A stretch of DNA of 64,000 nucleotides from Takakia lepidozioides (GCA_030704615.1 CM060731.1:33480001-33544000), one strand, 5' to 3'. Positions 34,144 through 64,000 are shown, counted from the first letter of the stretch. Numbers and translations: made by a program. Notes: a model not told the origin generated them from the letters alone.

Positions 34144-36327
34144 TCACAGAGTAGTGGTATACTCAATGTTGGTCTCGGGCAGCCATGAATTGGCATCTAT
34201 GAACTTAGTGGCCTGATACTTGCTGGCCTCTGTGGTATTGGTAATTTGTGTGGACCATGAAACCCTGCCTTTGGTGCTGGCCCCGGCTCCTGTGCTCTTG
34301 TACTCAGCGTAGTACAGAGTTGAGAGTGCAAAATCCCCTGACCAGGCAAGCCATCCTGCCGAGTTTACTACGGCCCCCAAATTGGACTTCAAATGAACGC
34401 AGAGAGAGTACAGCTTCCATGGCCGCCCCAAATACGTAGGAAACTGGGCCTGCTGTGCTTGGAGTGTGCTGGTGCCGTCGAACACGCAGTTTTGGAAGGA
34501 AGTACCCGTATTTTGACCGGGATCTGTTCTGCCCTGAGCAGTGTAAGTATTTTGCTGGCCAGCCAGACCCGTCTTGGCCAAAATGGTGCAAGACTGGAAG
34601 GAAACGGCCGCATTTCCGAAGATGAAATCCACAGTACCGTAGATGGTGCAGTTTCTGTAGAATTGGCGGAAGGTGTGGGTGTACAAGGTGTCTTGATAAC
34701 CTTCGAAGGAGCAGAGATAGAATGCGGTTTGGTCTGCGCTCACTCGCAGAGCAACAGCCTGGTGCTTGATGGCTCCTGCTGTGTTTTGAATTGTAATTCC
34801 CTGTGCGATGAAGCCCGGCCCATTAACAGCTGCATCAATCAGAGCACAGTTGTGACAGATTAGTGAATGCATCAATTGAGGAGTCGCAGAAATCTTACAA
34901 AACTAGCATACATGTGCTAGCGTGACCCAGATGTGACTATTTTCTAGTTCAGCCTACACTGATCATATATCATCTTTCATATCACGATTCTACTGTCCCC
35001 TTCCTGTTTGTTCCACCTATGTAAGCTGCCTCAATCAATTAGTTATTTGAGATAGCGATGGACTGAACAGACACTGTCATCCTGGTAAATGCTCAATCCA
35101 GCTTCAGATTAAGCGTGTATGTGATGGCTTTCCCAATATGCCTGCTTCTGCAAGCCCTCTGAACCACCAGTACTAGAGCCAACATAAACGAGTGCTCAGA
35201 GTGAAAAACGTGAAGGACGTACCGACAGTGGCAGATTTGAAAGTGGTCATGCCCTGCATTTGCACATTGTTGGCCGCAGTGATGATTGTTTTATTGATGC
35301 CATCACCCAGTAACATCAAGTTCTTCGCCGCCTTTGGAATAGTCACGTTCTCAGAATATGTCCCCGCTTTGATGTAGATTACGTATCTGGAACTGCTAGA
35401 CAAGGGGGCGTTGTCCACTGCCTTCTGGATCGTCGTGTATGTCCCCGATGAGTCCTTCGCAACGACAACATTTGCTTGAACGTTGTTACGTGCCACGAGT
35501 AGACGGCGGTCTCGGGGATTCAGCCACGAGGGAAAAGGATCCTCGACACCTAGAGACTCAGGTACAGGAACTGGCGAGGAGAGTAACCTCCTGTGGAGAC
35601 CCGGAATATGAAGATCTGAGAGGTTCGGCTTACGACCGAGGTGGAAAAATGAAGATTTCCAACTTGACAAGTCATTTCCAAAATCTGCCAAGGCGTTGAC
35701 GAAAGAGAGGGAAATGCTCAAAATCTGGGCTGTCTTGTTTCCCTGATCGGCCACCAACTGGCCATCTGCTGGTGCAATTTCCGAGAATACATCTATGCAA
35801 GTAGTGTGAAACTCCATCGCAGCACTAATCTGTGTCTTGAGGTCTTGAAAAAGGCTGCGCAGGGCAGTCAAATTGAAAGAGGAGATCTGGGAGGATGCTG
35901 CTGACAGCTGATCGAGCGAATTCTGCAAATTCTCCATACAAACTTCAACAGCAGCTGTGACATTTGCATTGGATCCGTTGAGAGCCAGGACGGTGGTCCT
36001 GGTCTCATTCACTGCTTGTGACGCTGATGAGACGGCCAAGGAGGTGAGGCCCTTAGAATCTGCGTTCTGCGAACTGGGGTTGCTTGATATTGTTCCTTTG
36101 CAAATCTCGGGGTATAGAGTTACGCTGCAAGCCGACTGAATGGCTTGCGTGACCCCATTCTCTTGTGCTACGTGATGTCCTTTTCTGCGAGCCAGAGGTA
36201 TAGATATAGCTACTACAAGAATGATAACTAACAGACCTAGTAAAGCAGTTGTAGTCATGCAGCAACAGCGCTTTCGTGACCTCGGTCTGTAACTTCCGTC
36301 CAATGGCTTGGACTCGTCTGATGTCAT
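34144..36327 (-). CDS. PME: Pectin methylesterase with N-terminal TM anchor and PMEI pro-domain, 2 exons: 36327-35223 and 34829-34144
   Basis: TM segment, PMEI Cys pattern, RRLL processing motifs, IYIKAGTYSENV, QAVALRV, YQDTLY, GTVDFIFG, YLGRPWK; phase-1 GT-AG intron 35222-34830. Confidence 0.95.
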
Positions 36328-44565: not shown

Positions 44566-45870
44566 TCACTGGTATCTTGAACATATGAAACCGCTCATGT
44601 AATTGTTGAAATGTACGTATAATTTGTGAGGGATGGTAATCTCCATTTCGGTTTTGTTATTGTGCCACATTTTGGTCTTTGAACTACTAGCTGTATTGCG
44701 CCATGATACAAAAACATTGTCTACTGAAATGTCATCTTCACCATCATCACTGGGAACCCAACCTGTATATAGACATCTTTCATATCGAGTTGTCATTGCA
44801 TGTTGTGACTTCATCGACATGCCTTTAGGTACTTTTGGCCAATACCAAAGAATCCGTATAATGCCATCATCATGTGTTTGTCTATCCACACTTAGTACTT
44901 TTCCGATCCACAATGGAACTCCAAGTTGAATTTGATCATCCTCAACATGCACACCAACAAAATGCCCAATCTCAACATCTTTTGTTAGATCAAATTCTCC
45001 AAATATATCCTCTGACAACTTGACCTTTCTCCCATTTTGATGGATTTGGATCATAGATTATTCATCTTTCCGTGATCGTTTCTTCGGTTGTCCACATCTT
45101 GTCCCAAAATATCCTCGAGGTTCAACGTCAGGCATGATTGGAAGAAGGGTTGTCATTTCCTCCCCGTTTGTATTTGAGCTATTCGGAGCATTATCTGTTT
45201 TCACATTATCAAGCCAAAAAGGTGTTGTTTGCCTAACACCATCGCGATTTCGTAGTGGAAATTGGATAAACTCATGCAATGACTGAATCTCTTGTGGATC
45301 GGCTGCATTGACGGGTGCAAATTCAGGTTTCGCCTTGGGGTTAGGAACAGATTTCAAGAATGGAATACCATCAGTAGGCATCCATTGTGGATCTTGAGCA
45401 TAATTTTTGTGCTGGATATGCGGAAGCCTGTTCTTCAGATAAAACCTGAAGTGATGTGGTTTGCTGATGCCAACAGACGTGTCACCTCCGGTCGGCAAAT
45501 GTGGTGTATTCCAGTCCCAGATGTCCTCCAATTGATTGACAAAAATATTTTTGTGTTTGCCTGCTCCAGCCTCATGTATCAAGGATATTAACTCTTTCAT
45601 CGAGGAAATATCAGTAGGTTTCAAAACCCCTGCTATGACGCTGAAACGTTGATCAATATCCTTATGAGGATGACCCACAGTAAGAAATCCAATGTGGATG
45701 TTGCGAAAATGGCCCAAAGCCACCAAACTTGTACACAGAACAAACAAATATTTATTTTTGTTTTCTCGTCCACAGTTATCTGCTTGAATACGCAAACTGG
45801 GAGGCAGTGTTCCTCGAGCTTGTTTCACTTTTGTGAGGGTCTTCATAATGGATGTCACAACTTTTCTATT
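44566..45870 (-). pseudogene. 3' half of a DUF7869/Sola1-related DDE transposase-like gene with a C-terminal SH3/Tudor-like domain
   Basis: LRIQADNCGRENKNKYLF..FLTVGHPHKDIDQRFS; GISKPHHFRFY; downstream GHFVGV..PLWIGKV..IRILWYWP; 5' part replaced by unrelated sequence. Confidence 0.75.
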
Positions 45871-47059
45871 TTTCAGATAGAAACAATGTCTGAAACTTGA
45901 CCGTGTGACAATAAGCAATTGTTGTGCAGAGGTAGATCAACCAATTCAAGTCAGTTTTGTAAGGACTAGTTTGTCTACACCTCAAACCGATATCAGAGCT
46001 GCTCACCTTAAGCCAAGGAACACCAAACTCCCCTTGGAATTAGAGGAATGAAATGAAATACTTTATAACGTCCGTAGAAAACTCAATGAGCTTATGGGAC
46101 AAAAGAAAAACAAGAAACAAGAAAAAGAAAGAAAATTTTGGTGGAAGAGTCTCAGCTTGACTTCTTGGAATGACCTCTGGTGCAGGGAAATAGTTCTCAC
46201 GGGTACCACCTTAGACTGATTTTTGTAGTCAGTAACTTTGGTGCCTAGTTTCTCTCTCCACTTTTTTTTCTTACTGCCATCTCTACTATTAGATCTGTGG
46301 GAGATTCACTGTCTATTCCATCAAACCCAATCTCTTTGCAGATGATATCAGAAATGCTTGGCAGCTGACCTCCATGAAGCTTTGACCGTTAGGCAATCCC
46401 TTGAGTAGTAGTTGTTTTTAATTAGGTGGTTAGAGTACATGCCAAGAACTCTAAAACCTAATCCACATCAAGAGTGAGATGCTCTTGGAAGTACAATAAG
46501 TAAGCAACTTACGTGCAAGATAATGACGGGCTTGAACTCGTGGTACTATGTCAAACTCTGCCTTTAGGATTACAATGTGCTCACAAACACTACAATCGTA
46601 GCTCTCGCCATAGGAGAAAAAAAAAAAACAGGAAAAGAAGAAAAGAACTATCCAAAGATAAGCTCAAATAGCTAATTATGAGACAAAGAAATGAAGTGAT
46701 ACTCCATAAGGTCCACAGAAAGCTCAAATAGCTTATGGGACAAAAAACAAGGAAGGAACTGGGGCCCTAAGAAGCCTAAAATCTACCTATTCATATCAAG
46801 AAATCCCCCCAAGTTTGACAGACTCATGAGATAAGCTACTAGCTTGACCTCAGCTTAATGAAAGATTTGTCAGGGATTGGTTGTCTTTGAAGAGGCAGTA
46901 GTGGTGGCCACAGATTTCATAATAGAGCGGACATCGAAAGAAGAAATGTTTCAGAGTCTCCATGCCCTATTTGTCTTCCCTAGCACAGGCAAGGCTCAGA
47001 GGAAAACATAAACAAAATACAAAAAAATTGAGGGGCTGTCAATGTGCCCAAAAACTCTG

Positions 47060-47400: not shown

Positions 47401-48849
47401 CCAGGAAGGTGTTATGATGTTGAAACGGGGTTCCAATCCAGCTCAAAATGTGCATAAAACGACAGAGAACGAGAGAGAGCTCAAGAAAAGTGTACACGGG
47501 TATGACTGCCAGTAGCCATGATTTGGGCATAGGTTTTGCCCTCTTTCTACAAAACTGTTGCACATTTTTGCTAGTTCTACTGCCTAGTTTTTCTACAACC
47601 CCCTAGGGGATTTTTGCTTTGATTAGGGGCTCTCGAGCCCTATTATGTTGCTGCTCTCCTTGCAAGAAGTTTGTTCGATCGACACTTTGAGGCAGGCTGC
47701 CTAGTTTTTCCACGACCTCCTATGGGGTTTGTATGTGTAGGGCTTATCCAACCCTTGTTTCTCCCTGTTCCTTTTAGGAGGCTTGATCGTGCTTCACTGA
47801 CTACGTACAATGTGTGTGCCTCCATGGCGTACCAACGGGGTTTTAATCATTTTTCCCCAAATAAACTTAATAAAGTTCTCACAGGGCCTCCGTCCCATGT
47901 TCATTTAAATATTTTAAAAAAAAAAATTGATCTCTCCTGGGGCAAGGATAACATCCTCTGCACCCGCACAGATACCTCGTCCATTATCTGGCATCACCTC
48001 CTCCCCGCTCAATGGCAAGTCCCCGATTGAATCAGATGACCCAGAGGTGAACTGGAGGCACCACAAGCTCATGATTCCGAGGACTAAAGCGCAGCTGGAT
48101 TTTGGAGCTCAGCTGTAGGAATTAGCTCATTTCCCTCCGTTTGCAAGTCCTTCTCTGCTTCAGACTCTCTCCCATTCCCATTCCTTGTGTTCTAGAGTTG
48201 CTTTGGGCTCGATGTTGCCCTTGATTAGAATCACTTGGGCTATGGCTCAGCAGTTTTTGGGTGATGATGATTAGTTTGTTGCGGTTCTTTCCCCCGTTTC
48301 GGTTCCTTCGTTTGCACTTGTCTCTGATCTTCTTTAGTGATCTAGAAACCCTATTTTAAGTAATTCCGGACTTTTGGCTTAAATCCGGACCAAACTTAAT
48401 ATATAACATAATTAAAATTAATTCAGGTATTAATAATAATATCGTGGAATATTGAGTCATTTAACTTGTGAAGTTGCACAATCCCATTCATGTAACATCG
48501 AATGGTAAGTCGAATGACGTACTTTGCATCAGAAAATTATAAAGATAAGATCGATTGAATGAAGTTATTAATAAATTGATAGATGTATGACATAAACAGA
48601 CGATTCAAGAAGATAATATACAAATGAAAAGTAAACATCCATACCATACTTACAGTATAGTAGTACCATGAACCAATGTATTGCAAGTTTTCAATTGATG
48701 GATTAAAACGTTGAATGGAATAAGGTTGGATTTCAATGAATCATGTGAATTATGTTTCAAAATATTTAGAGATCATTCCGATGTTCATATGACAACCAAA
48801 TATTGTGGAAGAGTGTCATGTAGATTCAGCTATAAAGTCATTGAACCAA

Positions 48850-49750
48850 GCTGGAATTAGGTTTTAGGTTATAGAGTTTGCTTGGGTACATTGAAACATA
48901 GTACTTGGTATGAATGGAAAAGAAAATATGGGAAAGTGTATAGATGACTTGGCACCTATGAAAATTTGTTAATGAAATATCCCAACCACAGATTGTATCC
49001 AAATTTCTATGAGGAATGTGAATCAAACAGTGGAGTTTGGTTTAGGGCTTAGGGTTTTAGAAAACTGTAAATGGACAAACAATTATGGAGTTTGAGTCTT
49101 TACCTATGCGTAGAACAATTCATGAATATTATCCCCACCACTTCAACCGTACCCAAAATTGGAAGTAATAAATAAATAAGCATCAAACATTGAAATTAGG
49201 TTTTAGGATATAGTGTTTGCGAGGGTACTAACCATAGTACTCGGTATGAATGGAAAAGAAAATATTGGGAAGGATATAGATGACTTGTCACCTATGATTT
49301 AGGGTTTAGGGAATAAAATTTCCCAACCACAGATTGTATCTAATCTATGAAGAATGCGCATCAAACAATGGAGTTGCGTTTAAGGGCTTAGGGTTTAGGG
49401 TTTAGAGAACTATAAATGGACAAACAATTATGGAATGTGAGACTTTACGTGGAGGTCGTACAACAATTCAGGAAATATCCCCTCCACTTCGACCGCACCC
49501 AAAACTGGAAGCAATAAATTAAATAGGCATCAGACATTGGAATTAGATTTTAGGGTACGGAGTTGAGTAGTGTAGTAAACATACTAATGGGTATGAATGG
49601 ACCAAAAAATCTGGGAAAGTGTACAAGTGACTTGTCACCTAAGAAATTAGACTTGAATGAAATGTCCCAAGGGCCATTCTATTATGCCCAACCTTGTAAC
49701 CCTTGAAGAATGCGCATCAAACATTCGAATTAGGTTTAGGGTATATGGTT
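48850..49750. repeat. ~340-bp tandem repeat (about 2.7 copies) containing TTTAGGG-like motifs
   Basis: Units start g(g/a)aattag at about 48853, 49192 and 49539 and share ggtatgaatgga, tgacttg(g/t)caccta and gaatg(t/c)g(a/c)atcaaaca; ttagggtttaggg within units. Confidence 0.8.
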
Positions 49751-50466
49751 TAAGGTGAGGACAATGTAAGGACTGAAGGCCCTAGAAGTATTGTCTTTAG
49801 AAGGTCCTAATAAGATAAACAGACCCAAGATAAATTGACCTGAGATGACACGGAATAACGGGTGGCAAAGCGAGGTTTCATGATTGATTAGTGACGAAGA
49901 AAATTGAGAAGAATCTTAAGATAGTCCGAAAAGACAGTAAAAGAAATGTAACTCTGTACTTGAAGCCAGACTTACAGAAAGCTACTGACGAGTAATGGGA
50001 GAAGATTCACTTCACAAGATTCACAAGCAGTAAACCGCAAGAAAGCTTGTCCATTGAAGCAACAACTTTCACAAATTGCCACGCGGTTTATACTCAGGAC
50101 ATTTTTTAGACCAATCATATTGAGCCCAACAATACGACCATGTGGACCGAGAATGAAGGAGATGGGCGAATCTGTTGAGGAGAAGACACTTTGGTGAGAA
50201 CCAGAGAACCAAAAGAAATGGGTGTAATGTGAGAAAGGAACTGCAAAGAGAATGAAGCACTGACATTAGGAAAACTAGGAACTCTGGATGATCACTCGAG
50301 GTTGCTGAAACATTACAGAGATGAGGTCCAGAAAAAAGCTGGTGGCTAGCAAAGAAGGTAGATTAATATTTGAACACGTGAAGAGAAACAAATGGAGAGT
50401 GGAGGTAAAACATTAGTTTTATTCTTGAAAACATGCCGAGGAGTGAACCTCCACAATATGTCCTTG

Positions 50467-53400
50467 TCAACCTTGTTCTCCGCTCGAGGTTACATTGTCT
50501 TCATTGTCTGACTGTTGATTGGCCTCATCCAAATTTGCTCGTGCTTTCTCCGCCTCCACCGCGGTAATTTTCTTAGAGCTATTACGTGTCGTGTTTTTTC
50601 TGGCGGACATTGTCCAAACGACAGAGTTAATGTGAATCCACTGAGGGGGATCATCTAGATTGAACTCCCAAACTTTGGACCAACAATCTTTGTACCTGTC
50701 CAACTTAGGTCGCCACCATTCGACGTGAACCTTCTTAAAATTCCTAGATCCTCTGTCGCGGACCACATCCGATATTGCCATCCCCATCCAAACTGGAAAC
50801 GTCACAGTATCTACTGGTCGAACCAAGACGAAGAATCCGTTCTCAATGTCCTTGAACGGATTTAGAGGCTGCTTCGGTCTATCACACCGGAGGCCACAAT
50901 ACGGCTCCATGACTTCATCTGCTTCCAACAGATCATCCTCTGCAGGTGTATGGATTCCGGCTTTGTGGTGGTTGATAGCCCACTTGGTTGAGGGCCAAAA
51001 ACCCTCTTTAAGCGTGATTGAATGTCGTGATTATCCAAAAATGGGAAGATCAAGTTCTGCAAGGATTGCTTCCCAGTATTGATCATATTGTATCATGATG
51101 TCACGATAATGATCGTCAAGCAACATCCCCTTCTTCCAGAACTCCCTGTATTTTTTAATTCCAGTTCTGATAAAGGACTGTTTATCGGATGAGTCATCTC
51201 CCACACCCCCAAATTGGTGTTTTTCTTACAGCCCTGGGTTGTACTGCTACATGCAACTTTGGAGATCCATCGGGATTCGACTTCCACATCTTCACCGCAC
51301 CTTTTTGGGGGAGCCACTCAGAATCATTTGCAAACTTCTTAAACTTCATGATATGCCAACCATCTTCATCTACATAGAATCGAAATACATGCATTTCTGT
51401 TTGCCCAACTAAAGCCTATTTTCCATCGAGAATGCAACCGCCCACATACGCCTTGAAATCTGGCACCTCTTGAATGATTTGAGGAATAAATTGCAAATCT
51501 TGAGAGATCATAAAAAACCACATAAGATCGGAGAGAACGTAGGTGTTGTTTTGCTTCAGCTTCTTCGATAAGTAACTGAAGAATCCGACAATGTCCTCAT
51601 GGGTATGGCCAACCATGAGAAATCCCATCTGAATCTCCTCAAACACTCCTCTCGCAGTTAGGAGCGACAGAAAAGCCAGCATCCACCTGTTTTTGTTTTC
51701 CTTCACGCAGTTGTCCAACTGCAGGTAGAGTCTTCACGGAAGTGGGATTTTTCTTTTTTTCGTCTTCTTATCGCCGAAAGATTTCAGGACGTCGAGACAC
51801 CTCGATTTACCCTTCATGAGAGATTCGAAAAAGGAATTTTGAGGTGGGTGGTCAAAGATGTTACGACTTTCGCGGCAAGAGGGCTTCTCTAGTTGGCGGA
51901 GGCATCTTGCTAGAGAGTCAATCGTGAAGTTCGGGTCTCCCGGCCAGAAGTCCAGAGAGTACTGTCCGTAGGCTCCGTCCCCGTGGTCGTGGGTGACCAT
52001 GCCGATTAGCAAGATTGGAAGTTGACCTAAGCCGGAGACCATCTTGTTCGTCGTCTGCAACCTTGGAATAGCTGTTTTCCGATGATCCATCTTGTCATGA
52101 ATGATGCAGAGAAACTCGGACGGCATCATAGCTGACTCATTCCTCCAGCTGTGATAGAGTCTCATGCAAGACTCCTGAAGCCTGAGGTGCTTATCAAGTG
52201 CTTTCTTGTGCGAGGCCTGCTCATCGCTACGTTTGTCCGACTTCTGATTAGGTCTTTGAGCATCTCACAGTCTGTGCATTTGGCAAACGTGCTACCACTT
52301 TTTCTAACCTCGACATTGGGAAAAATCCGTTGTCTGATTCTGCTGACGGCTGCCTGGGAGATAGGCTTCAACCCACATATTTTATTCGCCTGCAAGACAA
52401 ACCGGGGGAAATGAACCTCGCGCGATCACCCGAGCTTTAATAGTGAGAGGTCTGATACATTACGTGGAAGCAAAACAGGGAAGGTCCCCAAAAATATGTA
52501 ATTCGGAAAGTGGTAACAAGAAGAAGAACTGACCTCATTACACTCCTGACGATGTTTTTTCCAGTTCAGTTCAGGTGGCAGAATTCGAAGAGTATCTCTC
52601 CGTCCGTCTCCAATACAGCGGGTCTTATGAGGCATGAGATCGGAATTTTCGTTTATAATCGACATTAAGTTTCCTTCAGCTTGACGAGTTTGTGGACAGG
52701 GCCGTTTCACTCCGGAATTCCCGTGCAACGATGTAACCACACCCTCTCTGCTTAGTTTTTTGTATTCCATGTAGGTTGAACGACCGATTCCGTGAATTGT
52801 CCACCAAGCTATCTCACACACATCAACGCTCTCAATGGTTATGTAGGCCTTTGTCGAAACCCCGTCGATTCGATGAAGTCTTTTGGGAACATCAAAACCG
52901 AGCTCTCTTCGTTCGTCGTAAGAGGATCCCCAATAAGCGGTCCGGATAGCGAGTGTTTTTCTCCAGTCGAAATATTGCCAACACTGTAAATTGCAACGTT
53001 GTTTGCTGCTGACTTCTGGAACTGCCTGCAGAGAGAGGCGAGTATTTATCTTTTTGGAATCGTCTTTTTTCGGATCTTTTTTTGGTCTGTTGAAATGCCA
53101 GTATGCCGCTTTTTTCACACCTTTCTCGTTGTGACCAATGTATGTTTGTTCCCGGCTATTGATGAAACTACGAAGTTCATGTGACAATGTCCTGCCACTA
53201 TCAATCAACCGAGTTTGCGTCAATGGCCAGTTCACGAGACATATGAGATTGGTCGAACCGCCATTCAAAATCCTTGTAACGAGCACCCCGACGTGATGTT
53301 CTCCAACTTTCTCACAAAGTATCACCTCGTCAGGATGACATGCTCTCGTACAAAGCACTTTGTTCATCTCCAAGGAGAATACACATTTTATTTCTCCAAC

Positions 53401-53828
53401 TGTCTCTACCCATAGCAACATCGTTATTCGGAGATGGCCTTGTCATGTCAGATTCAATTTGTTCATTGAATTTTGGTTGGTAATCAGTCGCAGATGTCAA
53501 TTCAAGTCTCATCCTCCGAGAACCGAGGAACCTCAATGTTGGTGTTGGTGTCAGTCCCAGTATCTTTTTGAATTTGCACCACATCCCAAACGACAGGTGT
53601 TCCGATTGCTTCACCCAAAGAGTCCGCATCCATGTGCGGATATGGCAACGACATAGAAGAATGTGCCGGATCGCAAGACACTATAAAAACAGATATTGTG
53701 GACCCGTTTAGATGTCGTCCATGGCAACTTCCGCAACCAGTCACGTTGAGACATTTTGTTGTTGCGACGATAGAGTTCGAGCCCTGAAGAGTGAGGAAAA
53801 CTTGTTGACCAGTTTGGAACAACGACAT
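50467..53828 (-). pseudogene. Near full-length decayed DUF7869/Sola1-related DDE transposase-like gene with N-terminal Tnp1/En/Spm(DUF8039)-like domain(s) and C-terminal SH3/Tudor-like domain; intron 52533-52390
   Basis: CHGRHL..LPYP..LGEAIG..VVW; VCEIAWWTIHGI; HGNSG; FAKCTDC; IIHDKMDHRKTAIPR; LYLQLDNCVKENKNRWML..FLMVGHTHEDI; HVFRFY; FVLVRP..PVWMG..VHVEWWRP. Several frameshifts and a stop at about 51416. Confidence 0.8.
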
Positions 53829-56614
53829 TTCCACAAACCTCGCGCGATCGCGCGTGTATCCTATAGTACAGATTTTGGTGATTAATGATTCGGCACTATA
53901 TCGATGGACACTAAGAAAGAGTGAAACAGTAAGTTACTGAAGTTTGTTTAGAAAAACTGAGGATGAAGATGAAAAAAAACCTCGCGCGATCGCCCGCGTT
54001 TAGGGTTATAATGATTTGGAAATTGAAAATTGAACTCGGACTCTCGGATTGTCTACTAGAATGTAGAACGTAGGTTTCTATTGGTCAAAACAGATATTTT
54101 TAGAAAATTAAAGGATCTGCTAAAGCTACGACCCGAATGCACAACATTGTCTACGACTCCATAACAGAAATACAACCACATCGACGGGCGTTCGCGCGTG
54201 CTTCAGATGGATGAAATGAAGGACGGATGAATAATGGTAGACGAGTTTCGGATGACAAATAAGCAAATGGATGAATAAATGAAACATGGATGAACGAAAC
54301 AGCTGTAGTGCGAGTGATCATTCGAAGTACATAAAACGGTCGGGTGTGTATGTAAGATTTTTCCAGGCAGTGGATGGGAACAGAGGAGTAGAGAGATAGA
54401 ACAGAAACCCAAATGAAGTGGAGAGGCTCTCAATATTGACAGGAGTACAAAGGGAAGAATGAACGTAAAACAGACAGTCCTGAAGATCAGCAAGCCAGAG
54501 CAACTCAGAGAGAAAAAATGACATGCGTGCACATGGCAGGCTCTTATACGGATTGTCAAACAGTACAAGGTCGACGTGTTCACATTACAGAGGTGCATTT
54601 GGAGTGTCATGGATCGACAAATTGTCGCCCTGGATATGCTCTTTCATGTAATCTAATGGCTATTATGTGTCATCCAGAGCATAAATTCAAGTAGGAGTCT
54701 GAAATCCACCGAACATTAATGGGTCCATAAGTTATTGCGTCCAATGCGAATAACTAACTGATTCGAGATCTGGAATCTGACATCCAAAGCAGAAGCAACA
54801 AATCCAATATTGAATTAATGATACAAGAGAAGGAATAGTCGGCGACGAAAGTGGCCGCCTCTTAAGGCCATTGTGATGAGCCGGCGACCATTTATGGCAT
54901 GGTGACATTAAGTAGCCACAATGAACGTGGGGCCATAGATGAGGTGTAGATAGAGAAAACGTGAGACCGATCAAATCCCAGATGCACGTCCCGACACCTC
55001 ATTATTGAACCTATGAATAATATTTTATCATTGGATGAAATAAGAGCCTTCGCGGATGAAACAGACGTATACTGGATGAGATGACTGCCCTAGTGGATGA
55101 TTCAACTCCCCTCATGGATGAGCGCCGTCACGGGAACCCGCAATAATTCCAAGGTGTTCAATTATAAAGGCGTCGGATTGCCGCGCTGTAACGCTCTGGA
55201 CAAACTAGTGGAGTCCATTCATTACTGACAGTCATGTCGCATCATTGATTGTATCTGCATAAATTTAGGGGTCATCAGCAAACCGTTGGGAAACATCCCG
55301 CCTTTCATTCATCCATGCATCGAGGCCACAAACCGTAGGATGCGACATAACGCCGACAGTTGAGATCACAGGTGGTAAGGCATATAAGGAGGAGTGACCG
55401 AAAGGAGTCTCCTTTTGTATTCATTTGATACATGCGGAAGCCCTGTTCAATTTTGGACTCAATGAAGAGGTGCGAGAGAGAGCGACTGAGCGAGAGAGGC
55501 AGAGATGTGGAGATCGAGTAAACGAAAGAGTGAGAGATCGAGGGAGCGTGAGTTGGAGTGAGTGTGGGTTTGAGCAATTCACCGTGTGCGGGGGAGTGTG
55601 ACAGAGTGAAAGGAGGGCAAAACAAGAGAGTATGTTATCCCGGAAGCTGTTGTGCGCACTCGAGCGAGAAAGCTCATCCAGCCCTGCAGGGAGGATCCTT
55701 GCCTGAAATGGCATCAAGCAGGTAAAATTTTTTTCCGTCTTCTTCGTGCATGCACTGAGCGATTCTTCTGTGGGCTGCAGAGATTGCAGGAAGGTAGAAG
55801 TTGCATGCTTGATTGATTGTTTGCTTGATTGTTTGCTTGTTTGAGCGAATGATTGCTTGATTTGATTTTTGGATTGATTCTAGAGTTAAAGAGGTAGGAT
55901 GGTCGATAGAAAGATTGGGAATTGTGGAAGATTTCGGGATATGTATGCTTTCATTGAGGAACAACTCCGGATTCGAGACATGAGAAATTCCGATTTCATA
56001 GGGTTCGTAGGTACAGCTGGCAACTGTTTAGGTTTTGCAGCTTATGGTGTAGGCCTCAGTATAGATACCATGACACAGTCCATTCACGCGCGATCGCGCG
56101 TGAACTTATTTTACCATGTACAGTTCTGGATACCAAACTGGGTTTTTGGCTCGATTCGGTTATGAACATTATTTCCATGATCTGCATTACGTGACTCTCG
56201 AAATAGGGATTCCTAGTGATTTCGTAAGCCGTAGACAAACCTCGCGCGATCGCCTGTGTTTATTTCAGTGATAGTATTGTGAAACATGGTTTAGTTATGA
56301 CTTGGAGCGAGGCCAATAAGCACTTTCATCAGTGGAATGGTTTGAACGAAGCACGCGCGATCGCGGGTGCTTCATTCAGTAAAAGTGGTCACATAAAAGA
56401 GCACTAACGAACAGTAGCTAATACCAAACTGGGTCGAAAAAATCATTCATTAGTAGGACAATAAACTCAGTGTTTTCAATTTTAAGGATTATGCAATTAT
56501 TGAACATTGCACAATCGCGCTAATTTGACTCCGTAGTTTACTGCATTGGATGAGAAATTGAAGATGTGATGCGAAAAAATGCCCTGAAGAAGCACGTGCG
56601 ATCGCGCGTGCTTC
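52417..56614. repeat. Dispersed CpG-rich palindrome, consensus CGCGCGATCGCGCG (core GCGATCGC), 8-9 copies
   Basis: Copies at 52417, 53841, 53983, 54185, 56083 (perfect 22-bp TTCACGCGCGATCGCGCGTGAA), 56243, 56348, 56508 (decayed) and 56589. Confidence 0.9.
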
Positions 56615-58464
56615 ATTTGGTTGGTACTTGTATTCTAACGACCATCAACAACACCATTGATACCCAGATGATTAGATGACACATATAAGGATATGTCTGA
56701 GTGCATACTCAAAACTGTAAAGTGTTTCGGAAGACATTAGTTCACATTATACAATGTGTCGTGTGCATACATATCGCTACACAACTACATCGTTGTCCAA
56801 AACCACACAACACATGTGCACGCCACACACTAGTATACCATTAGTCCAACTAGTCCAGCCACTAGTCCAACCACTAGGCTACAACTAGTCAGTCATTAGG
56901 CTGCCACTATGCTGCCCAGTATGGCAGTCACTAGTCCACACAATGATAAAGAAGAAGAATACAAGCACAAGCTCATGCGAGCTCACAAAGCTGAAGCATA
57001 AACTCATGCATATATAAACTCATCACTCAAATATAAGTCAAGCCAAGTGCACCCCATGCCACCATCCACATGCCCAGACAAATACCGGTGAAGGAGACAA
57101 TCCCGAGACAACTGCGCTGTCTTCCTCCACTGAAGAAGTGGGGGGAGACAATGTAAAGGATAACGCTGATTCTAGAGACGTCTTCGATAATGAGATTTCA
57201 GAAATAGACTCAAGGATGGGATTCAGTCCAGTGGAGGGGGATATGCCATACGGATGTCATCATATCAAGGTTTAAGCCAACGAGTTAGAGACATCCTTGA
57301 TGGTCAGGCATCTAGGGCATTGGTCGGCGATCAAAACTCTATTGACGTGAGTATTTCAGATTATGAGCTGTCCTAACACTTGTAAAATATTACAAACTTG
57401 ATATAACACCAATGGAACTATATAATAACCTATTGCTCGGTGATCAGGGATGCCTCGGCGTGAGCCTGGTCACGTGAGCGCGTGAGCGCAACTGCGCTCA
57501 CGCCACGTCACCTTGCGCAAATGCCACGTCACGGGGCTCACTCCACGTCATCACACGTGAAGGCCGCGTCACCACGCGCCCAGAAAGAAGTGGAGTGTAT
57601 TCCCGCGGATTGGCACCCTTTACCGCGGAAACAAGCTGGACAACATAATAAAAGACATTGAATAAAGGATGGATGAATGTACAGTTGGATGATAAACAGA
57701 TGGATGAGTGTGAAAAATGAATGTAGATGGATGAATGAGGGATGGATAAGAGTAAAATGGATGAATGTATAATGGATGTTGAGCAATGACAAAAATTCAT
57801 GACAGGAAGATGCATGACCAAATCTTTTGACGAATGCACCTCGTATATGAAATGAGTGTGGAAGGTTTGTGGGGTGGATTAAAGAGTACAGAGGATGAAT
57901 GTACAATGGATGTTGTACAAAGGAAAAAATTCATGAATGGAGCACGCATGAAACAGTGTAGATGAATGCACAATGGATATGAGAAGAGTCAGGGAGGTTT
58001 GTGAGATGGATTCATACATATTGCAATTTAAACGAAAGTTGATTCTGTGATTATTATTTGTTCTAAAGGAACAACTACGGTGGAGGAAGGGGATTCAACG
58101 TTTTCCAGATAATATGAAAATGAATATTAAAAGAATACAGTTCAGTCTGACTCAGAGTCAGTACAATGTATCCCCGCTTCCTCTGCATCTAAGTCTAAGT
58201 ATTTTAGAACACCGGATCCACGCTGGATACACCTACGGCTGGCCACTAAAAAGTCAGGGGATAGGGACTCGGCCGCGTGAAGTGCCATTGCCTCGGCATA
58301 AACATGAAGAAGAAAATTGGAAAGGGGGCTGTCGAAAACAGACTCGCCAGAAATGACTGTATCTCCTGAAGATCCACCGCTGCCTTTCCTGAAAGACAGC
58401 CTGAAAAAGTTATTACTGTAACTTTGATGTTATCGAGAAATTGAGTATGACTCCCAAAGAGGGT

Positions 58465-59036
58465 TTAGCACTTACTCACATGAAAAGTCGTTGTCGCGTT
58501 CTGCTGCAGAGAAGCAGCTCTTGTAGGGTTTAGGTGTCCTCCCCCAAGATCCAAAGTTGATGTCCCGGGGAGGAGCACTGTGTTGTAGAGGTCAGAATCA
58601 CCCTCCATGCCAAAAAGGCTTCTTCCGCCTGCCTTGCATGCGTGGTAAGTTGCTCCTGCACCAGACAGGAGAACATGAACAGTTTGGAGGGGGGGATTTA
58701 AGCAGATGAAACTGTTGAAAGGAAACCAATTCGGAAGGGAAAAAACGAACCTGTGGACACAGAAAGATCGACCACCCGTGCAGAGCGGTGGCTGCATGAC
58801 TCCAGCAGTATTTGCATGAACGCTGGTGACTTTTCCTTTGCACCTCTCCAAGGAGTGCCATCTGGTCTCTTCAGAGTTTGACTGGACTGCATGAAGTTGT
58901 ACAAAATGTCATCGACATGGGGCTCATAGGGGGGGTTGACGAAACAACCCTGGTCAGAAATCTCAAAGCTGCGAATGGAGGATGGTGTCTTTGAGGTGCG
59001 AATCCTCCGCAGGCAGATCGCCTCGAACATCCTCGT
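58465..59036 (-). CDS. 3' exons of a spliced N6-adenine/N4-cytosine (beta-class-like) DNA methyltransferase-like gene; exons 59036-58751 and 58655-~58480; 5' part separated by the LTR retrotransposon; possibly a pseudogene
   Basis: Joined peptide ..WRGAKEKSPAFMQILLESCSHRSARVVDLSVSTG|ATYHACKAGGRSLFGMEGDSDLYN aligns by eye to the QKP..L..LI..S..GD.VLDPF.GSGTT..A...GR..IG.E.D..Y signature; 95-nt GT-AG intron 58750-58656. Confidence 0.7.
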
Positions 59037-59161
59037 CTGGCAAAGATAGCAGGTTAGTGTGGTAAACACAATCTATAGTGGAAGTGTGTACATCGGCTAT
59101 TCAGAACTCTGACACAAAAAAATCATGAATCGGTGATGATCGATGTCGATCATAACACATT

Positions 59162-60757
59162 TGTCGCGCACCTCACTTCGGTAAACTCCCCTTCAAGTCA
59201 TAGTTAACCGCTTTGATGCGCGCGCCTGACTCCCAACCTGGCCGCCGGGCCAACTTGGAGTTTCGGCTACTCACCGGGACATAACGGTCCCCATTCGCTT
59301 CCTCTAAAACCCTCCACCTATTTGGGACTAGGAGAATTCCCTTTGGTAGATGGCAGTCCGGAACAGCTCCCCACTCTTTGGTCGCTTTCCGGCTCGCACG
59401 ATTACTCACTAGTTTTTGGTCACCAACGGGCTTGCACCGTTCTCGGGGTTACTACTCCCTTATATATACTTCTGTAGCTGTCCGCGGGGGTTTCATAACC
59501 AGCCATGCCATTTTATGGCGAACCACCACGAAAACCCTCGACTCCCGGTGGTGAGTCGCGGTGAGTCTTGGCCCACTCACCGCGGCCCCAATGGACCATG
59601 ATGAGTCCCAAGACTCCCCACGACTCCCACCTCGAGGTCTCCACCCCATGGTGAGTCCTATGCCACCCCCACTAAGTCCCACTAAGCTACCACCACCCCT
59701 TGTGGAGCCACCTCCACCGCAACCCGGTGTGCGGGGCTCCACCTAGTGAGCGCCTCCGCCTCTTTGAGTGCCTTGGGCACTCAAGGGTGCTTCAGCCCCC
59801 CATACCTATCGTCGCCGCTGCCCCCACCACAGGGGCAGCCCCTCATGTGTCCCGACCCCCTGCCCTCAAGGCAAAGGGCCGCGACACACACCCCTACCAA
59901 CAGGGAGTCGATGTCCTCATCGACTTGTCCATTTTGTAGAAACGAACATCCAAGTTGTGGCGTCCCACATCAAGGAGTTTGTTTCCGTACATGGCGTCCC
60001 ATGGCAAAGAACCAAACCCCACACTTGACTCCACTCTCCACTAGCTAGTTCGGCCGACTTCCTCCAAGTCCCGGCCAAGGGTGGAGCCTCTCCAGCTCCT
60101 CCCAGTGCACTCTTCTTGGCCTACTTCAAGGCCAAGGAACGATCCTCCCCGAGGATCGAATCGCCTTACTGCAACAACATCGCTTGCGATCGCTCATGAT
60201 GCCGCTTTTGGCATCACCTTGAGCAAGGGTTCACCTGGAACCCTCTTTGACTAGGAAGATAACCTTGAACCAACCGTGCGCCCCAATCACTACAATTGGG
60301 TCCGCCTTGGAATGCTGGCCTGAGGTACAGGAACACGCCGAAGCCGCACTACGACTTCGTCCCGAGGCTACACGATTATAGTACGTGAACGGAAGCACGT
60401 AGCTTCCGCGTTAGCCCGCACTACAAGGCAACCCCCTCGGTAGCGCAGTTATAGTACGCGCACGCGCCAGGTGCGCACTAGCACGTGAACTCCCAAATAA
60501 GGCGCAAGTTTCCTTGCCCCTTGGATGGGAGTCACCCGATTTCGGCACTGCGCAAACACACGATTAACTCAATTTACCTCTCCTACTTTTGTAAGCTAGC
60601 ATGCATTCTACACACTAGTCAACCACACCATGCATCACCATTTCAAACACAATAGGACGCACAATATTTGGAACCCATTTCCTTTATAACAAATTTTTGT
60701 ACAATACAAGTTTTTGCAATCGGATTCCTGAGCTAGCTAAACCGGGCTAAGTATGCA
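59162..60757 (-). mobile_element. 3' LTR (~1.6 kb) of the chromovirus
   Basis: Minus strand starts TGCATAC right after the PPT GGGGGAGGAAA (60768-60758) and ends GGTGCGCGACA at 59162; TATA-like tract at about 59461. Confidence 0.75.
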
Positions 60758-60791
60758 TTTCCTCCCCCACGCTCCAAGGTTGATGTCCCCA

Positions 60792-63700
60792 TCAACGTTT
60801 CTTCCGCTTTTGAGGTCGCCCTTCGAACGCTGCAACTGCCTCGGATGCGTTTCCCATTTCTGAGGCACGCACCCAAGATGCCTCCACAAGATGATAGCCC
60901 TTCCATTTGACGAGATACTCCGTTTCTCGGTTCTTGAACCTCCTCGACTTAAGTATTGCCTCCACCTCGTACTCGGGTTCATTTTCATGATCCAACAGCA
61001 TAGGTGGCGGACGCAACACTTGCTGCCGATTCGGACGTGCTTCATCTTTGAAGTAAGGCTTCAAAAGGGAGACATGGAATACTGGGTGCACCTTGCTGTT
61101 TGCCGGCAGCTCCAATTCATACACATCCTCATTCATAACCCTCCGAATGCGAAAGGGACCCGCATACGGAGGTACGAACTTCGGACTCACTTCCGGAGGT
61201 AGTCGAAAATTCTTGATGTTCAACCAGACCTCTGTGCCTGCCTCAAACTTCACTTCCCTCCGCTTCCGATTCGCCTGCCTTTCATACCGTTTCCTAGCTT
61301 TGGCAATGTTGTACTTTGCGAGCTTCAACAAACGCTCGCGTTCTTCCAGCACCGCCGCTACTGCCGGTTCCTCAACGTCCTGGGTGGCCCAACTTGTCGG
61401 CACCAGAGGTGCTTTTCCATAGACCAACACAAAAGGGGAAATTCCCGTCGCGGAGTGTTCTGTGTTATTATAACAGAACTCTGCCGCGTCTAAGTGTTCC
61501 ATCCAGTCTGATTGGTCTGCCGACACGTAATTCCGCAAGAATTGCTTCACTACGGAATTCACTCTTTCCGTTTGGCCGTCCGTCGTAGGTCGGAAGGCGG
61601 TGCTCATCTTCAGCCTCGTCCCCATCTTCTTCCAAAGTGCTCTCCAAAATTTACTCGTAAACTTTGGGTCGCGGTCCGAGACAATATCCTTCGGGACTCC
61701 ATGATGCTTTAAGACGTGGGCGAAGTAAAGTCGCCCTGTCTCCTGCGCCGTTGCCGTCTCCTTGGTGGGGATGAAATGGGCCATTTTACTGAACCTATCT
61801 ACCACCACCATGATTGCATCGAATCCTTTTGACAGCGGCATAGCAGTCATGAAATCCATCGAGACGCTTTCCCAAGTCCCCTCTGGAATCGGCAAGGGTT
61901 GTAACAGCCCCGCTTGCTTTTTGTACTCGCTCCGGTTTTGTTGGCATGTGGTGCATGTCTTGACATACTCCTCTGCCTCCTCCCTCAGTTTGGGCCAGAA
62001 ATACTCTTTCTTCAAGAGTGCCGCAGTGCGCTTGGCTCCGCCGTGGCCCGCAAGCAGGCTATCATGGCATTCTCTCAAGAGGCTATCTCTGATCCCTCCC
62101 TTTGGCACATAGAGACGTTTTTGCCTATACCGGAGCAGTCCTTTTTGCAAGTGGAACTGCGATTTAACCCCCATTCTCAAGTCCTGCATCACGCGCTTTG
62201 CCAGCTCATCCTTCCGGCAAGCCTTCCGGATCTTCCTTTGGAGCGCCGTCTCGCCCTTGTACACCAACAAGAGCTGCTGCTTTCTACTTAAAGCATCGGC
62301 CACCACATTGTCCCGTCCCGGTTTGTACTGGATATCCACGTCGAACACTGCCAAAGTATCTTGCCACCTAAGTTGTTTTGGGGACAACTTGGGCTGCGTG
62401 GCAAAATACTTCACCGTGACATTGTCCGTGAACACCTTCACTGGGTTGGAACCAACATAGTGGCGCCAGAGTTCAAGGCAATGCACCACCGCCTTCATCT
62501 CTTTTTCGTGCGTCGGCCACCGTCGCTCCACTTCATTCAGTTTCTTACTTTCGTAAGCCACTGGACGTCCATCTTGCATAAGTACACCCCCAATCGCGAA
62601 GTCCGATGCATCTGTATGAATCTCAAACGGACGATCGAACTCCGGGATTTTCAAGACTGGAGCTTCCGTCATCCGCTGCTTCAATTCAGCAAAAGCTTGG
62701 CCACAAAATGTGTTCCATACCCAGACTTTGGATTTACACAGAAGGTCCGACAGCGGCCCCGCGATCTTGGCGAAATTTCTCACATACTTCCGGTAATAGG
62801 AGGCGAGTCCTAGGAAGGATCGCACTCCCGGGACCGAAGTCGGAGGCTCCCAGTCCAAGATCGCCCTCACCTTTCTGTCATCCATTTTGATCCCATCCTG
62901 TGTAATCACATGCCCCAGGAACTCCACTTTTGTGACCCCGAATTCGCACTTTGAAGCTTTGGCATACAGCTTCCCGTCCCGCAATTTTTGGAACACCCTT
63001 TTGAGGTGCTCCAGGTGCTCCTCCTTTGTTTTCGAGTACACCAAGATGTCGTCGATGTACACGATCACAAAGTCATCCAACCACTCCTGGAAAAGGCTGT
63101 TCATCAGCGTGCTAAATGTCGCTGGTGCATTGGTGAGCCCAAAAGGCATCACCAAGAACTCATATGAACCATACCTTGTCCTGCACGCGGTCTTCTCCTC
63201 ATCTCCTTCTGCCACCCGAATTTGGTGATAGCCGGAGCGCAAGTCGATCCGGCTGAAATACTTCGCTCCTGCCAACCGATCGAAGAGGTCGTCGATCCTT
63301 GGCAAAGGGTACCGGTTTTTGATAGTCACCTTATTCAAAGCCCTGTAATCGACACACATCCGCAGCGTCCCATCCTTCTTGTCTGCGAATAGCACCGGGG
63401 CTCCGTAAGGTGACTTACTCGGCCGGATGTACCCCTTTGACATTAGATCCTTGAGCTGAGTCTTCAGCTCGACCAACTCTCTGTGGCTCAACCGGTAGGG
63501 CGCCTTGGCAGGCGGTTCCGATCCCGGTATCACCTCAATCTTGTGGTCAACTCCTCTTCGCGGTGGCAAGCCGCTTGGTAAATCCTCCGGCATCACATCC
63601 TGGTATTTCTCCAAAATCCCTTTGATCCAATCTGGGCTCGGCTCCCCATCGCCTTCTCCTTTCACTTCTCTAATGTAAAGCAAAAACTGGGACTCGTGTG

Positions 63701-64000
63701 CCTCCTCCACGGCCCACTCCTTTGCTGACAGAAGGTTTATTCGCCCTCCCACGGATTTGGGCGTTTCCGACACTCGTAAAACTTCACCACCATTCCCACA
63801 TGGCAGCGTGACTACTCTCTTGCGGCCATCTATGACCGCTCCGGATTTGCTCAAAAAGGTCATCCCCAAAATGAGATCCACTCCATCGATCTCGCAGATA
63901 GTGAAGTTCTCACGTCCCTCCCAACTCCCCAGTTGAAGAGGAACATCAAACGCCAACCTTGTCGCCAACTGAGGTTCTCCTTTGGCAGAGCGCACCTCAA
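60792..64000 (-). mobile_element. Intact-looking chromovirus (Ty3/gypsy) pol: partial protease, RT, RNase H, integrase and chromodomain; runs off the window end
   Basis: Uninterrupted 1067-aa ORF: [43 protein letters not shown] zinc finger, [34 protein letters not shown]. Confidence 0.97.

Follow-up and report, generated by a model that had tools for sequence, protein, structure and literature searches.

Why does a stretch of transposon-rich plant DNA hold exons that read like the motifs of prokaryotic DNA methyltransferases? The question is raised by positions 58,465 to 59,036 of a 64,000-nucleotide stretch from Takakia lepidozioides (GCA_030704615.1, CM060731.1:33480001-33544000), the whole of which is referred to here as the window. 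An original prediction had joined two minus-strand exons at this place into a gene resembling the N6-adenine/N4-cytosine (amino) DNA methyltransferases, and had proposed that the gene was spread as transposon cargo. We consider it likely that the last three exons, on the minus strand from 59036 to 58142, form the intact-looking 3' end of an accessory gene that exists in multiple copies, that this gene is cargo of Mutator-like DNA transposons in non-seed plants and encodes a pseudo-methyltransferase accessory protein, and that the copy in the window has been split by a Ty3/gypsy retrotransposon (gypsy in the following).

The gene end in the window

The gene end consists of exons A, B and C (Table 1). 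The coordinates and the spliced reading given for the first two by the original prediction, which had joined them across a 95-nt GT-AG intron, were correct, and this intron is conserved in relatives. The junction reads ...VVDLSVSTG, followed by ATYHACKAGGRSLFGMEGDSDLYN. The third, terminal exon with its stop codon had been missed. Exon C lies in a different frame from exon B. The donor of exon B is located after 58476 (GTAAGT) or after 58472, and the candidate acceptors of exon C before 58400, 58388 or 58365; the frame is preserved by GT-AG joins between donor 58476 and acceptor 58365, and between donor 58472 and the pyrimidine-rich acceptors 58400/58388.

No premature stop or frameshift interrupts any of these exons. 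Exon A carries the conserved blocks DDiLyNF...DGtPWRGaKEKsPaFMQ (motif X) and VVDLSVST(G) (motif I), and exon C shares the C-terminal module ...YAE..A...LD[LI][ED]A[ED] with the family described below. Taken together, the part in the window comprises the second half of a methyltransferase-like domain (a recognition-equivalent stretch followed by motifs X, I and II-III) and the tail of the protein. A tblastn search of the 64-kb window gave no second copy of the exons.

At 58567 the contigs break in each of the four public runs. A contig of run X5 that is 99% identical on either side has 80 different letters in place of the 70 at 58497-58566, which may reflect allelic variation or a short replacement, copied from a template, within the linker. 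Positions 58537-58566 are identical at 27 of 30 positions to the polypurine-tract region of the gypsy element (60760-60789). The idea that a retroelement polypurine tract ends the coding sequence here is weakened by the translation of the segment, GTSTLD, which matches GPSTLD of the relative P0195.

A eukaryotic family with a conserved gene structure

An exhaustive phmmer search with exon A among 1.84 billion cluster representatives gave 33 proteins with E<1e-3 (best 2.7e-14). Nearly all are short open reading frame (ORF) fragments from ENA, Logan and JGI assemblies, called on eukaryotic contigs that contain introns. One match is an annotated protein of 758 residues from the moss Ceratodon purpureus (P0029), which together with three paralogs makes four hypothetical proteins; a word-based search with the Ceratodon protein returned its own paralogs only. 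The alignment of the relatives shows the family block DDvLyNf...DGxPWRGaREKsPaFMQxLIE...VvDLsxSTG. When a full-domain profile was searched against 5.8 billion proteins, no bacterial relative was found, only fragments of the family itself.

The annotated, spliced protein of Ceratodon (P0029, locus L002) reads ...NTG and then ASIIACARSNRHLIALERDSEIF across the same intron position, and the genomic introns of Ceratodon lie directly before T-H-N-F and directly after N-T-G, that is, at both positions that flank exon A of the window, whose acceptor likewise precedes T-R/H-x-F. The intron after sTG is shared by P0029/L002, P0008/L004, P0006, P0189 and P0195, with the fragments P0008, P0006, P0189 and P0195 running through it in frame, and is missing in two lineages (L007 and P0203). 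Apart from the two lineages without the intron, both the splice and the peptide pattern predicted for the window are conserved in the family.

In relatives the full protein has four parts: a ParB/Srx-like N-terminal exon, a second conserved domain with a basic linker, a complete but permuted (beta-class) domain derived from amino-methyltransferases, and an acidic tail. Many copies in other assemblies have decayed; stops interrupt, for example, the methyltransferase-like reading frame in L001 and L007 and the N-terminal exons in L003 and L009, whereas the sister copies L004 and P0027 remain open.

Homology to beta-class amino-methyltransferases

A profile of the C-terminal half of the family (A3, 33 rows) was searched against 177,635 distinct sequences of the Protein Data Bank (PDB). 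The 12 matches with E<0.1 comprised 11 sequences, belonging to 7 beta-class amino DNA methyltransferases, and one arginine methyltransferase. The DpnA-like M1.HpyAVI (5hek) scored best at 2.2e-6; CcrM (4e-4), 9c3u/8urk (3.5e-3), TTHA0409 (2zie), M.RsrI (0.018), the N4-cytosine enzyme 8s9m (0.04) and M.MboIIA (0.085) were also matched. In the alignment GaREKsP falls on HPTQKS/P (motif X), VlDLtaSTGas on VLDPFxGSGTT (motif I), and gRhliAlExD on xRxFIGIE (motifs II-III). In full-length relatives D-x-P-x precedes motifs X-I-II-III by ~150 residues, which is the permuted order IV...X-I-II-III.

Single-sequence phmmer searches of the PDB matched 5hek/5hfj only (E=0.3). The Pfam family N6_N4_Mtase (PF01555) matched P0029 with E=0.015 and was the best Pfam match, below threshold, in 10 of the 33 members (best E=1.4e-4), any other family being found in at most three. 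Exons A and B of the window, searched separately, gave no Pfam match. As judged by these alignments, the family is homologous to the beta-class amino DNA methyltransferases at motifs X-I-II-III, as the spacing of the motifs had originally suggested.

Loss of the catalytic motif under purifying selection

An NPPY tetrapeptide in the window had been put forward as a possible catalytic motif IV, with the proviso that it might be a coincidence. It lies within the first third of exon A, where conservation is poor, at a distance of ~30 residues from the start of motif X, and its column holds unrelated residues in relatives. This lack of conservation, and the presence of the family's own motif IV in an upstream exon, led us to reject NPPY as motif IV and to regard it as coincidental. 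Beta-class enzymes have their target-recognition region between motifs VIII and X, and the variability of the corresponding start of exon A fits this role.

The upstream exon of relatives, which encodes the N-terminal half of the domain, reads G[IV]D[LMV]I[IF]xDxPxxLxVPV...ILLxH...DWWG. When the full domain was used as a profile (A4), GiDliiaDiPegL aligned on the DPPY strand (vDliitDPPYn) of 5hek, CcrM, 9c3u and 8urk. Each of these alignments is weak when taken alone; they are collinear in the five top sequences, representing three enzymes, and at the expected N-terminal place. The variants of motif IV in the family are DAPE, DAPS, DTPS, DIPG and DIPE, or D-x-P-[E/G/S], with an aromatic residue or a proline pair in no member and a fourth position that varies freely. 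No characterised beta-class enzyme is known to depart from (D/N/S)PP(Y/F/W). In motif I the aspartate and the final glycine are kept (VvDLsvSTGa), and the phenylalanine and the first glycine are lost in most members.

Since motif IV and motif I are degenerate, methyl transfer to exocyclic amines is unlikely. An active methyltransferase, about which the original prediction had itself been uncertain, is improbable with motif IV lost, and the family is probably a pseudo-methyltransferase, not an amino-methyltransferase, to judge by its motifs.

Coding sequences of three Ceratodon paralogs were rebuilt from their loci and compared by Nei-Gojobori rates. The ratio of nonsynonymous to synonymous substitution rates (dN/dS) was 0.05-0.07 in the methyltransferase-like domain (residues 430-650), at a synonymous rate (dS) of 0.52-0.65; the corresponding ratios were 0.05-0.15 in the N-terminal annotated domain and 0.18-0.24 in the linker. 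The Ceratodon paralogs are old copies under strong purifying selection, and the methyltransferase-like domain is functional despite the lost motif.

A probable Mutator-like transposase as partner

A homologous large ORF was found upstream, in head-to-head orientation, in 8 of the 8 relative loci having upstream sequence: L002, L010 and L011 on three chromosomes of Ceratodon, L003 and L004 in one plant-like ENA assembly, L005, and the JGI metagenome contigs L007 and L008. The partner ORFs are 28-32% identical to the 1320-residue ORF of L005, and the ten best named neighbours in the ESM-Atlas all have MULE or SWIM domains. The sequence shows ...FMADAAxAN...CYFH..., a pattern of Mutator-type transposases, and D...D...CxH is readable in it. 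With a probable Mutator-like transposase next to the gene at every one of these loci, the proposal of transposon cargo is supported.

Copies of the gene are dispersed over the three Ceratodon chromosomes, and in run X6 at least four distinct contigs cover single gene positions; the gene is therefore multi-copy in the organism of the window as well. A methyltransferase domain of DIRS retrotransposons was dropped as a candidate solely on the ground that all relatives are paired with a probable Mutator-like transposase and not with a reverse transcriptase or a tyrosine recombinase.

A conserved exon that was missed by annotation (IPLCR...VRP...FVxGY...[YW][ED]GNHRxxAW) separates the partner ORF from the point where the Ceratodon genes are annotated to begin. 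This ParB-like exon is present upstream in all relative loci, and falls outside the window. The stretch [Y/W][E/D]GNHR..AW was found in L002, L003, L004, L005 and L009; a DG-x-HR-x-x-A loop that follows a beta-strand is the signature of ParB/Srx. For the N-terminal exon of two members, the ESM-Atlas neighbours were ParB_N, DUF6551 and DndB (0.91-0.92) and the fungal DUF3723 (0.96). The ParB-likeness is best treated as a lead with a motif behind it, short of demonstrated membership.

The annotation of Ceratodon (KAG0605740.1 and paralogs) begins downstream of this exon, which occupies 8670-9514 in L002, 7662-8537 in L010 and 7273-8080 in L011, and the annotated proteins are probably N-terminally truncated. 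For L002 8670-9236 the nearest language-model neighbours were fungal DUF3723 proteins (0.96, 180/256 features). DUF3723 is an accessory gene of the giant Starship transposons, and a ParB-like accessory module may be common to unrelated eukaryotic transposons.

The gypsy insertion and the probable end of the element

The intron preceding exon A is ~100 nt long in Ceratodon, and in the window it carries a long terminal repeat (LTR) element. The retrotransposon was therefore inserted in a short intron and would have pushed the 5' exons beyond the window. This insertion of ~7 kb severs the copy from its 5' exons, and a full protein is probably no longer made from it. The original prediction had placed the 5' exons past the retrotransposon. 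The insertion in the preceding intron agrees with this, and by analogy with relatives the 5' half would lie just beyond the window. No coding similarity was found in the intron remnant, 59037-59161. Read depth jumps 10-100-fold at 59144 in four public runs, and a loose end at 59164 comes from a contig of another copy.

At the other side, contigs of runs X5, X7 and X8 break at exactly 57445 (the loose ends of X7 and X8 differ, and the X5 contig starts there), and depth is near zero over 57134-57401 in three of the four runs (X5-X7). The end of the carrying element was therefore placed at 57445, where it presumably lies.

Table 1. Features of the gene, its carrying element and the inserted retrotransposon
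Feature	Position	Strand	Remarks
3' untranslated/subterminal part of element	57445..58141	(-)	GATGGATGAATG-like repeats 57660-58010; GC-rich end 57445-57590 with CACGTCA motifs
Terminal exon C	58142..58400	(-)	acidic C-terminal module (...HVYAEAMA...KYLDLDAEE...); TGA stop 58144-58142
Exon B	58473..58655	(-)	equivalent of motifs II-III (ATYHACKAGGRSLFGMEGDSDLY), then variable linker; 3' end uncertain
Intron A-B	58656..58750	(-)	95 nt, GT-AG, phase 1, after ...STG
Exon A	58751..59036	(-)	starts after AG 59038-59037; variable first ~40 residues, motif X, motif I
Remnant of intron 5' of exon A	59037..59161	(-)	~125 nt between gypsy LTR end and exon A acceptor
3' LTR of Ty3/gypsy chromovirus	59162..60757	(-)	~1.6 kb; polypurine tract 60758-60775 just upstream, then TG
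Ty3/gypsy pol (reverse transcriptase, RNase H, integrase, chromodomain)	60792..63995	(-)	continues past window end

Other features of the window

The outer half of the gypsy LTR (59144-59947) is 5-50x deeper in the public runs than the inner half (59948-60751); other elements of higher abundance, or solo fragments, may contain it as well. The last ~150 nt before the placed element end (57445-57600) are GC-rich, with a local palindrome at 57468-57512 and five to six CACGTCA/CACGTGA motifs, which are candidate subterminal binding sites. Degenerate short repeats of the GATGGATGAATG type fill 57660-58010, and a duplication of 134 nt relates 57715-57880 to 57850-58012.

Beyond the element end, five to eight palindromes with a CGCGCGATCGCGCG core are spread over 4 kb (52402-56623). 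They adjoin an unannotated ORF of 331 residues on the minus strand (52426-53421) that has no Pfam match. Another minus-strand ORF (45058-45918) matches DUF7869 strongly (E=2e-39) and likely encodes a domain that is associated with the transposase of a different DNA transposon. That the DUF7869 gene and the GCGATCGC palindromes belong with the element as one composite unit is unsupported, as contig breaks put the end of the element at 57445 and the relative loci share nothing with 48000-58200; a quick scan found no palindrome arrays in the loci of the relatives. A tandem array with a period of ~340 nt and TTTAGGG-like (plant telomere-type) motifs occupies 48850-49755. The only clear host gene seen encodes, in two ORF pieces on the minus strand (34144-36327), a pectin methylesterase with a pectin methylesterase inhibitor (PMEI) pro-region, whose best named relatives, from the lycophyte Diphasiastrum, are 62-66% identical.

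Discussion

Accessory genes are carried by other members of the Mutator superfamily, such as the gene for the anti-silencing factor VANC of Arabidopsis VANDAL21 and mudrB of maize MuDR, and VANC binds the non-coding repeats of its own element sequence-specifically. In the explanation favoured here the methyltransferase-derived domain would have been retained as a non-catalytic DNA-binding module, perhaps one that still binds S-adenosylmethionine. The variable recognition segment would confer element-specific recognition, and the ParB-like module would add a second part that binds DNA or nucleotides. The element would most likely benefit through recognition of its own ends or internal repeats, which would help the transposase or counter host silencing. 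A more specific proposal is that a ParB-like domain and a retooled amino-methyltransferase form a self-recognition module of prokaryotic mobile-element origin, which binds or unconventionally marks the DNA of the element and blocks silencing or guides the transposase, an analogue of VANC made from phage or plasmid parts. In this full form the proposal is speculative, and we would not expect it to hold.

Several observations weigh against a transposon-borne pseudo-methyltransferase. The gathering score of Pfam N6_N4_Mtase (26.7 bits) was never reached, the best score being 19.4 bits (E=0.0011, P0029:531-660). An AlphaFold2 model of the methyltransferase-like domain from an 18-row alignment had a predicted local distance difference test score (pLDDT) of 41, so that the model was unfit for a fold search, although its order of secondary structures is compatible with a Rossmann-like methyltransferase fold. 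For the ParB-like exon the pLDDT was likewise 41 and the model unusable; the profile of the N-terminal exon (A5) gave no match with E<10 in the PDB, and Pfam ParB_N was matched in none of six members. The partner transposase ORF has no Pfam match. Neither terminal inverted repeats nor target-site duplications were found, nor long inverted repeats in 20-25 kb of the relative loci. The copy's own 5' half and its own transposase are unseen in the window, their placement following from analogy with relatives, and no run recorded as RNA contains the stretch. Finally, we infer the loss of activity from motifs alone, and DNA binding, a role in transposition or anti-silencing and the inactivity of this copy purely by reasoning from the features described.

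The same data can be read in favour of an active, transposon-borne N6-adenine/N4-cytosine methyltransferase with a non-canonical D-x-P-x catalytic loop. The homology to active enzymes is clear, strong purifying selection extends over the whole domain and so over its N-terminal half too, motif I retains its aspartate and motifs II-III their acidic residues (..E.D), and one member is named 'DNA modification methylase' at source, albeit by an automatic label. A catalytic residue would, on the other hand, hardly vary between E, G and S as position 4 of motif IV does, this motif has neither an aromatic residue nor PP in any member, unlike the form known from characterised beta-class enzymes, and in most members motif I lacks F and its first glycine. 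An active enzyme is for these reasons quite improbable. Even less probable, and in our view very much so, is that the gene belongs to the host, either from the start or as a transposon gene that was domesticated, with incidental transposase neighbours and with an ordinary gene in the window that was hit by a retrotransposon. The annotation of the Ceratodon paralogs as ordinary hypothetical genes agrees with this, and strong purifying selection is also compatible with it, but a host gene would hardly be accompanied by the same head-to-head ORF at all eight loci from at least four sources, recur as the same two-gene unit on different chromosomes of one genome, be multi-copy in the organism of the window, and leave many decayed copies (stops in L001, L003 and L007, for example).

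A separate matter is whether the copy in the window could still function, the gypsy element of ~7 kb being spliced out with the intron and the full protein being made. Exons A, B and C are free of stops and frameshifts and conserve the residues of the family, and usable splice sites exist. Against this, an intron so short in Ceratodon here holds an LTR element that brings transcription signals of its own in the same orientation, and no spliced RNA was seen among the public-run contigs. In run X8, guessed to be RNA, the contig comes from a ~93% paralog whose intron donor is mutated and whose intron is unspliced, which is uninformative either way. We regard a functional copy as unlikely, and retain the reading of a transposon accessory gene whose copy here was split by the insertion.

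The orphan exons in the window are then explained as the tail of a transposon gene that was cut by a nested retrotransposon. Among eukaryotes, genes that descend from amino-methyltransferases of bacteria are very rare, with rotifer N4CMT and Marchantia DN4MT1 as the two known cases. If the explanation is true, the family would be a third independent eukaryotic recruit, one that is borne by a DNA transposon, is fused to a ParB-like part and has lost its catalytic motif, yet is strongly conserved. It would also offer a testable example of a transposon-encoded accessory protein made of prokaryotic mobile-element parts. A caution follows for plant genomes, where matches to 'DNA methylase' domains are not evidence of N4-methylcytosine (4mC) or N6-methyladenine. 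No description of the family was found in the literature, of which our coverage was incomplete, and an earlier description is possible.

Relation to known systems

The family shares the motif order IV...VIII...recognition...X-I-II-III with the beta-class enzymes (5hek, CcrM 6pbd, M.RsrI 1eg2, M.MboIIA 1g60). These enzymes have (D/N/S)PP(Y/F/W) and DPFxGSGTT, whereas the family has D-x-P-[E/G/S] and D-[LWF]-x-x-[SG]-T-G, and differs further in being eukaryotic, intron-bearing, fused to other domains and below the Pfam threshold. Proteins in which a ParB N-terminal part is fused to an N6_N4 methylase occur in phages and plasmids among the Pfam architectures of prokaryotes. Like the family, they have a ParB-like N-terminal module followed by a beta-class domain and are encoded on mobile elements; the family differs by an extra conserved domain and a long linker, and its ParB-likeness is drawn from a motif and language-model neighbours alone.

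As a second, element-specific gene that adjoins the transposase gene and evolves with the element, the gene resembles those of VANC and mudrB, to which it has no sequence relationship. No accessory gene of a Mutator-like element is known to have ParB-like and methyltransferase-derived content. Cytosine-5 methyltransferases were reportedly found by de Mendoza and colleagues in 2018 to have been captured by retrotransposons. These too are DNA methyltransferase-type domains on transposable elements, but they are C5 enzymes in pol genes with intact motifs, in contrast to a separate gene of a DNA transposon that is derived from an amino-methyltransferase and has a degenerate motif.

The closest eukaryotic parallels are N4CMT of bdelloid rotifers (PMC8885841) and MpDN4MT1 of Marchantia (bioRxiv 10.1101/2021.02.12.428880), both of which place a permuted, prokaryote-type domain in an intron-containing eukaryotic gene; N4CMT is, in addition, fused to a eukaryotic accessory domain (PMC8885841), and is described as having no eukaryotic homologs (PMC8885841). 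In each case a host gene at a single locus has kept its catalytic motifs intact, and its 4mC activity is demonstrated or genetically supported, whereas the family is multi-copy transposon cargo without the catalytic motif. The family thus combines two known kinds, the eukaryotic recruits of amino-methyltransferases and the accessory genes of transposons, and the window adds to it the severed 3' end of one copy.

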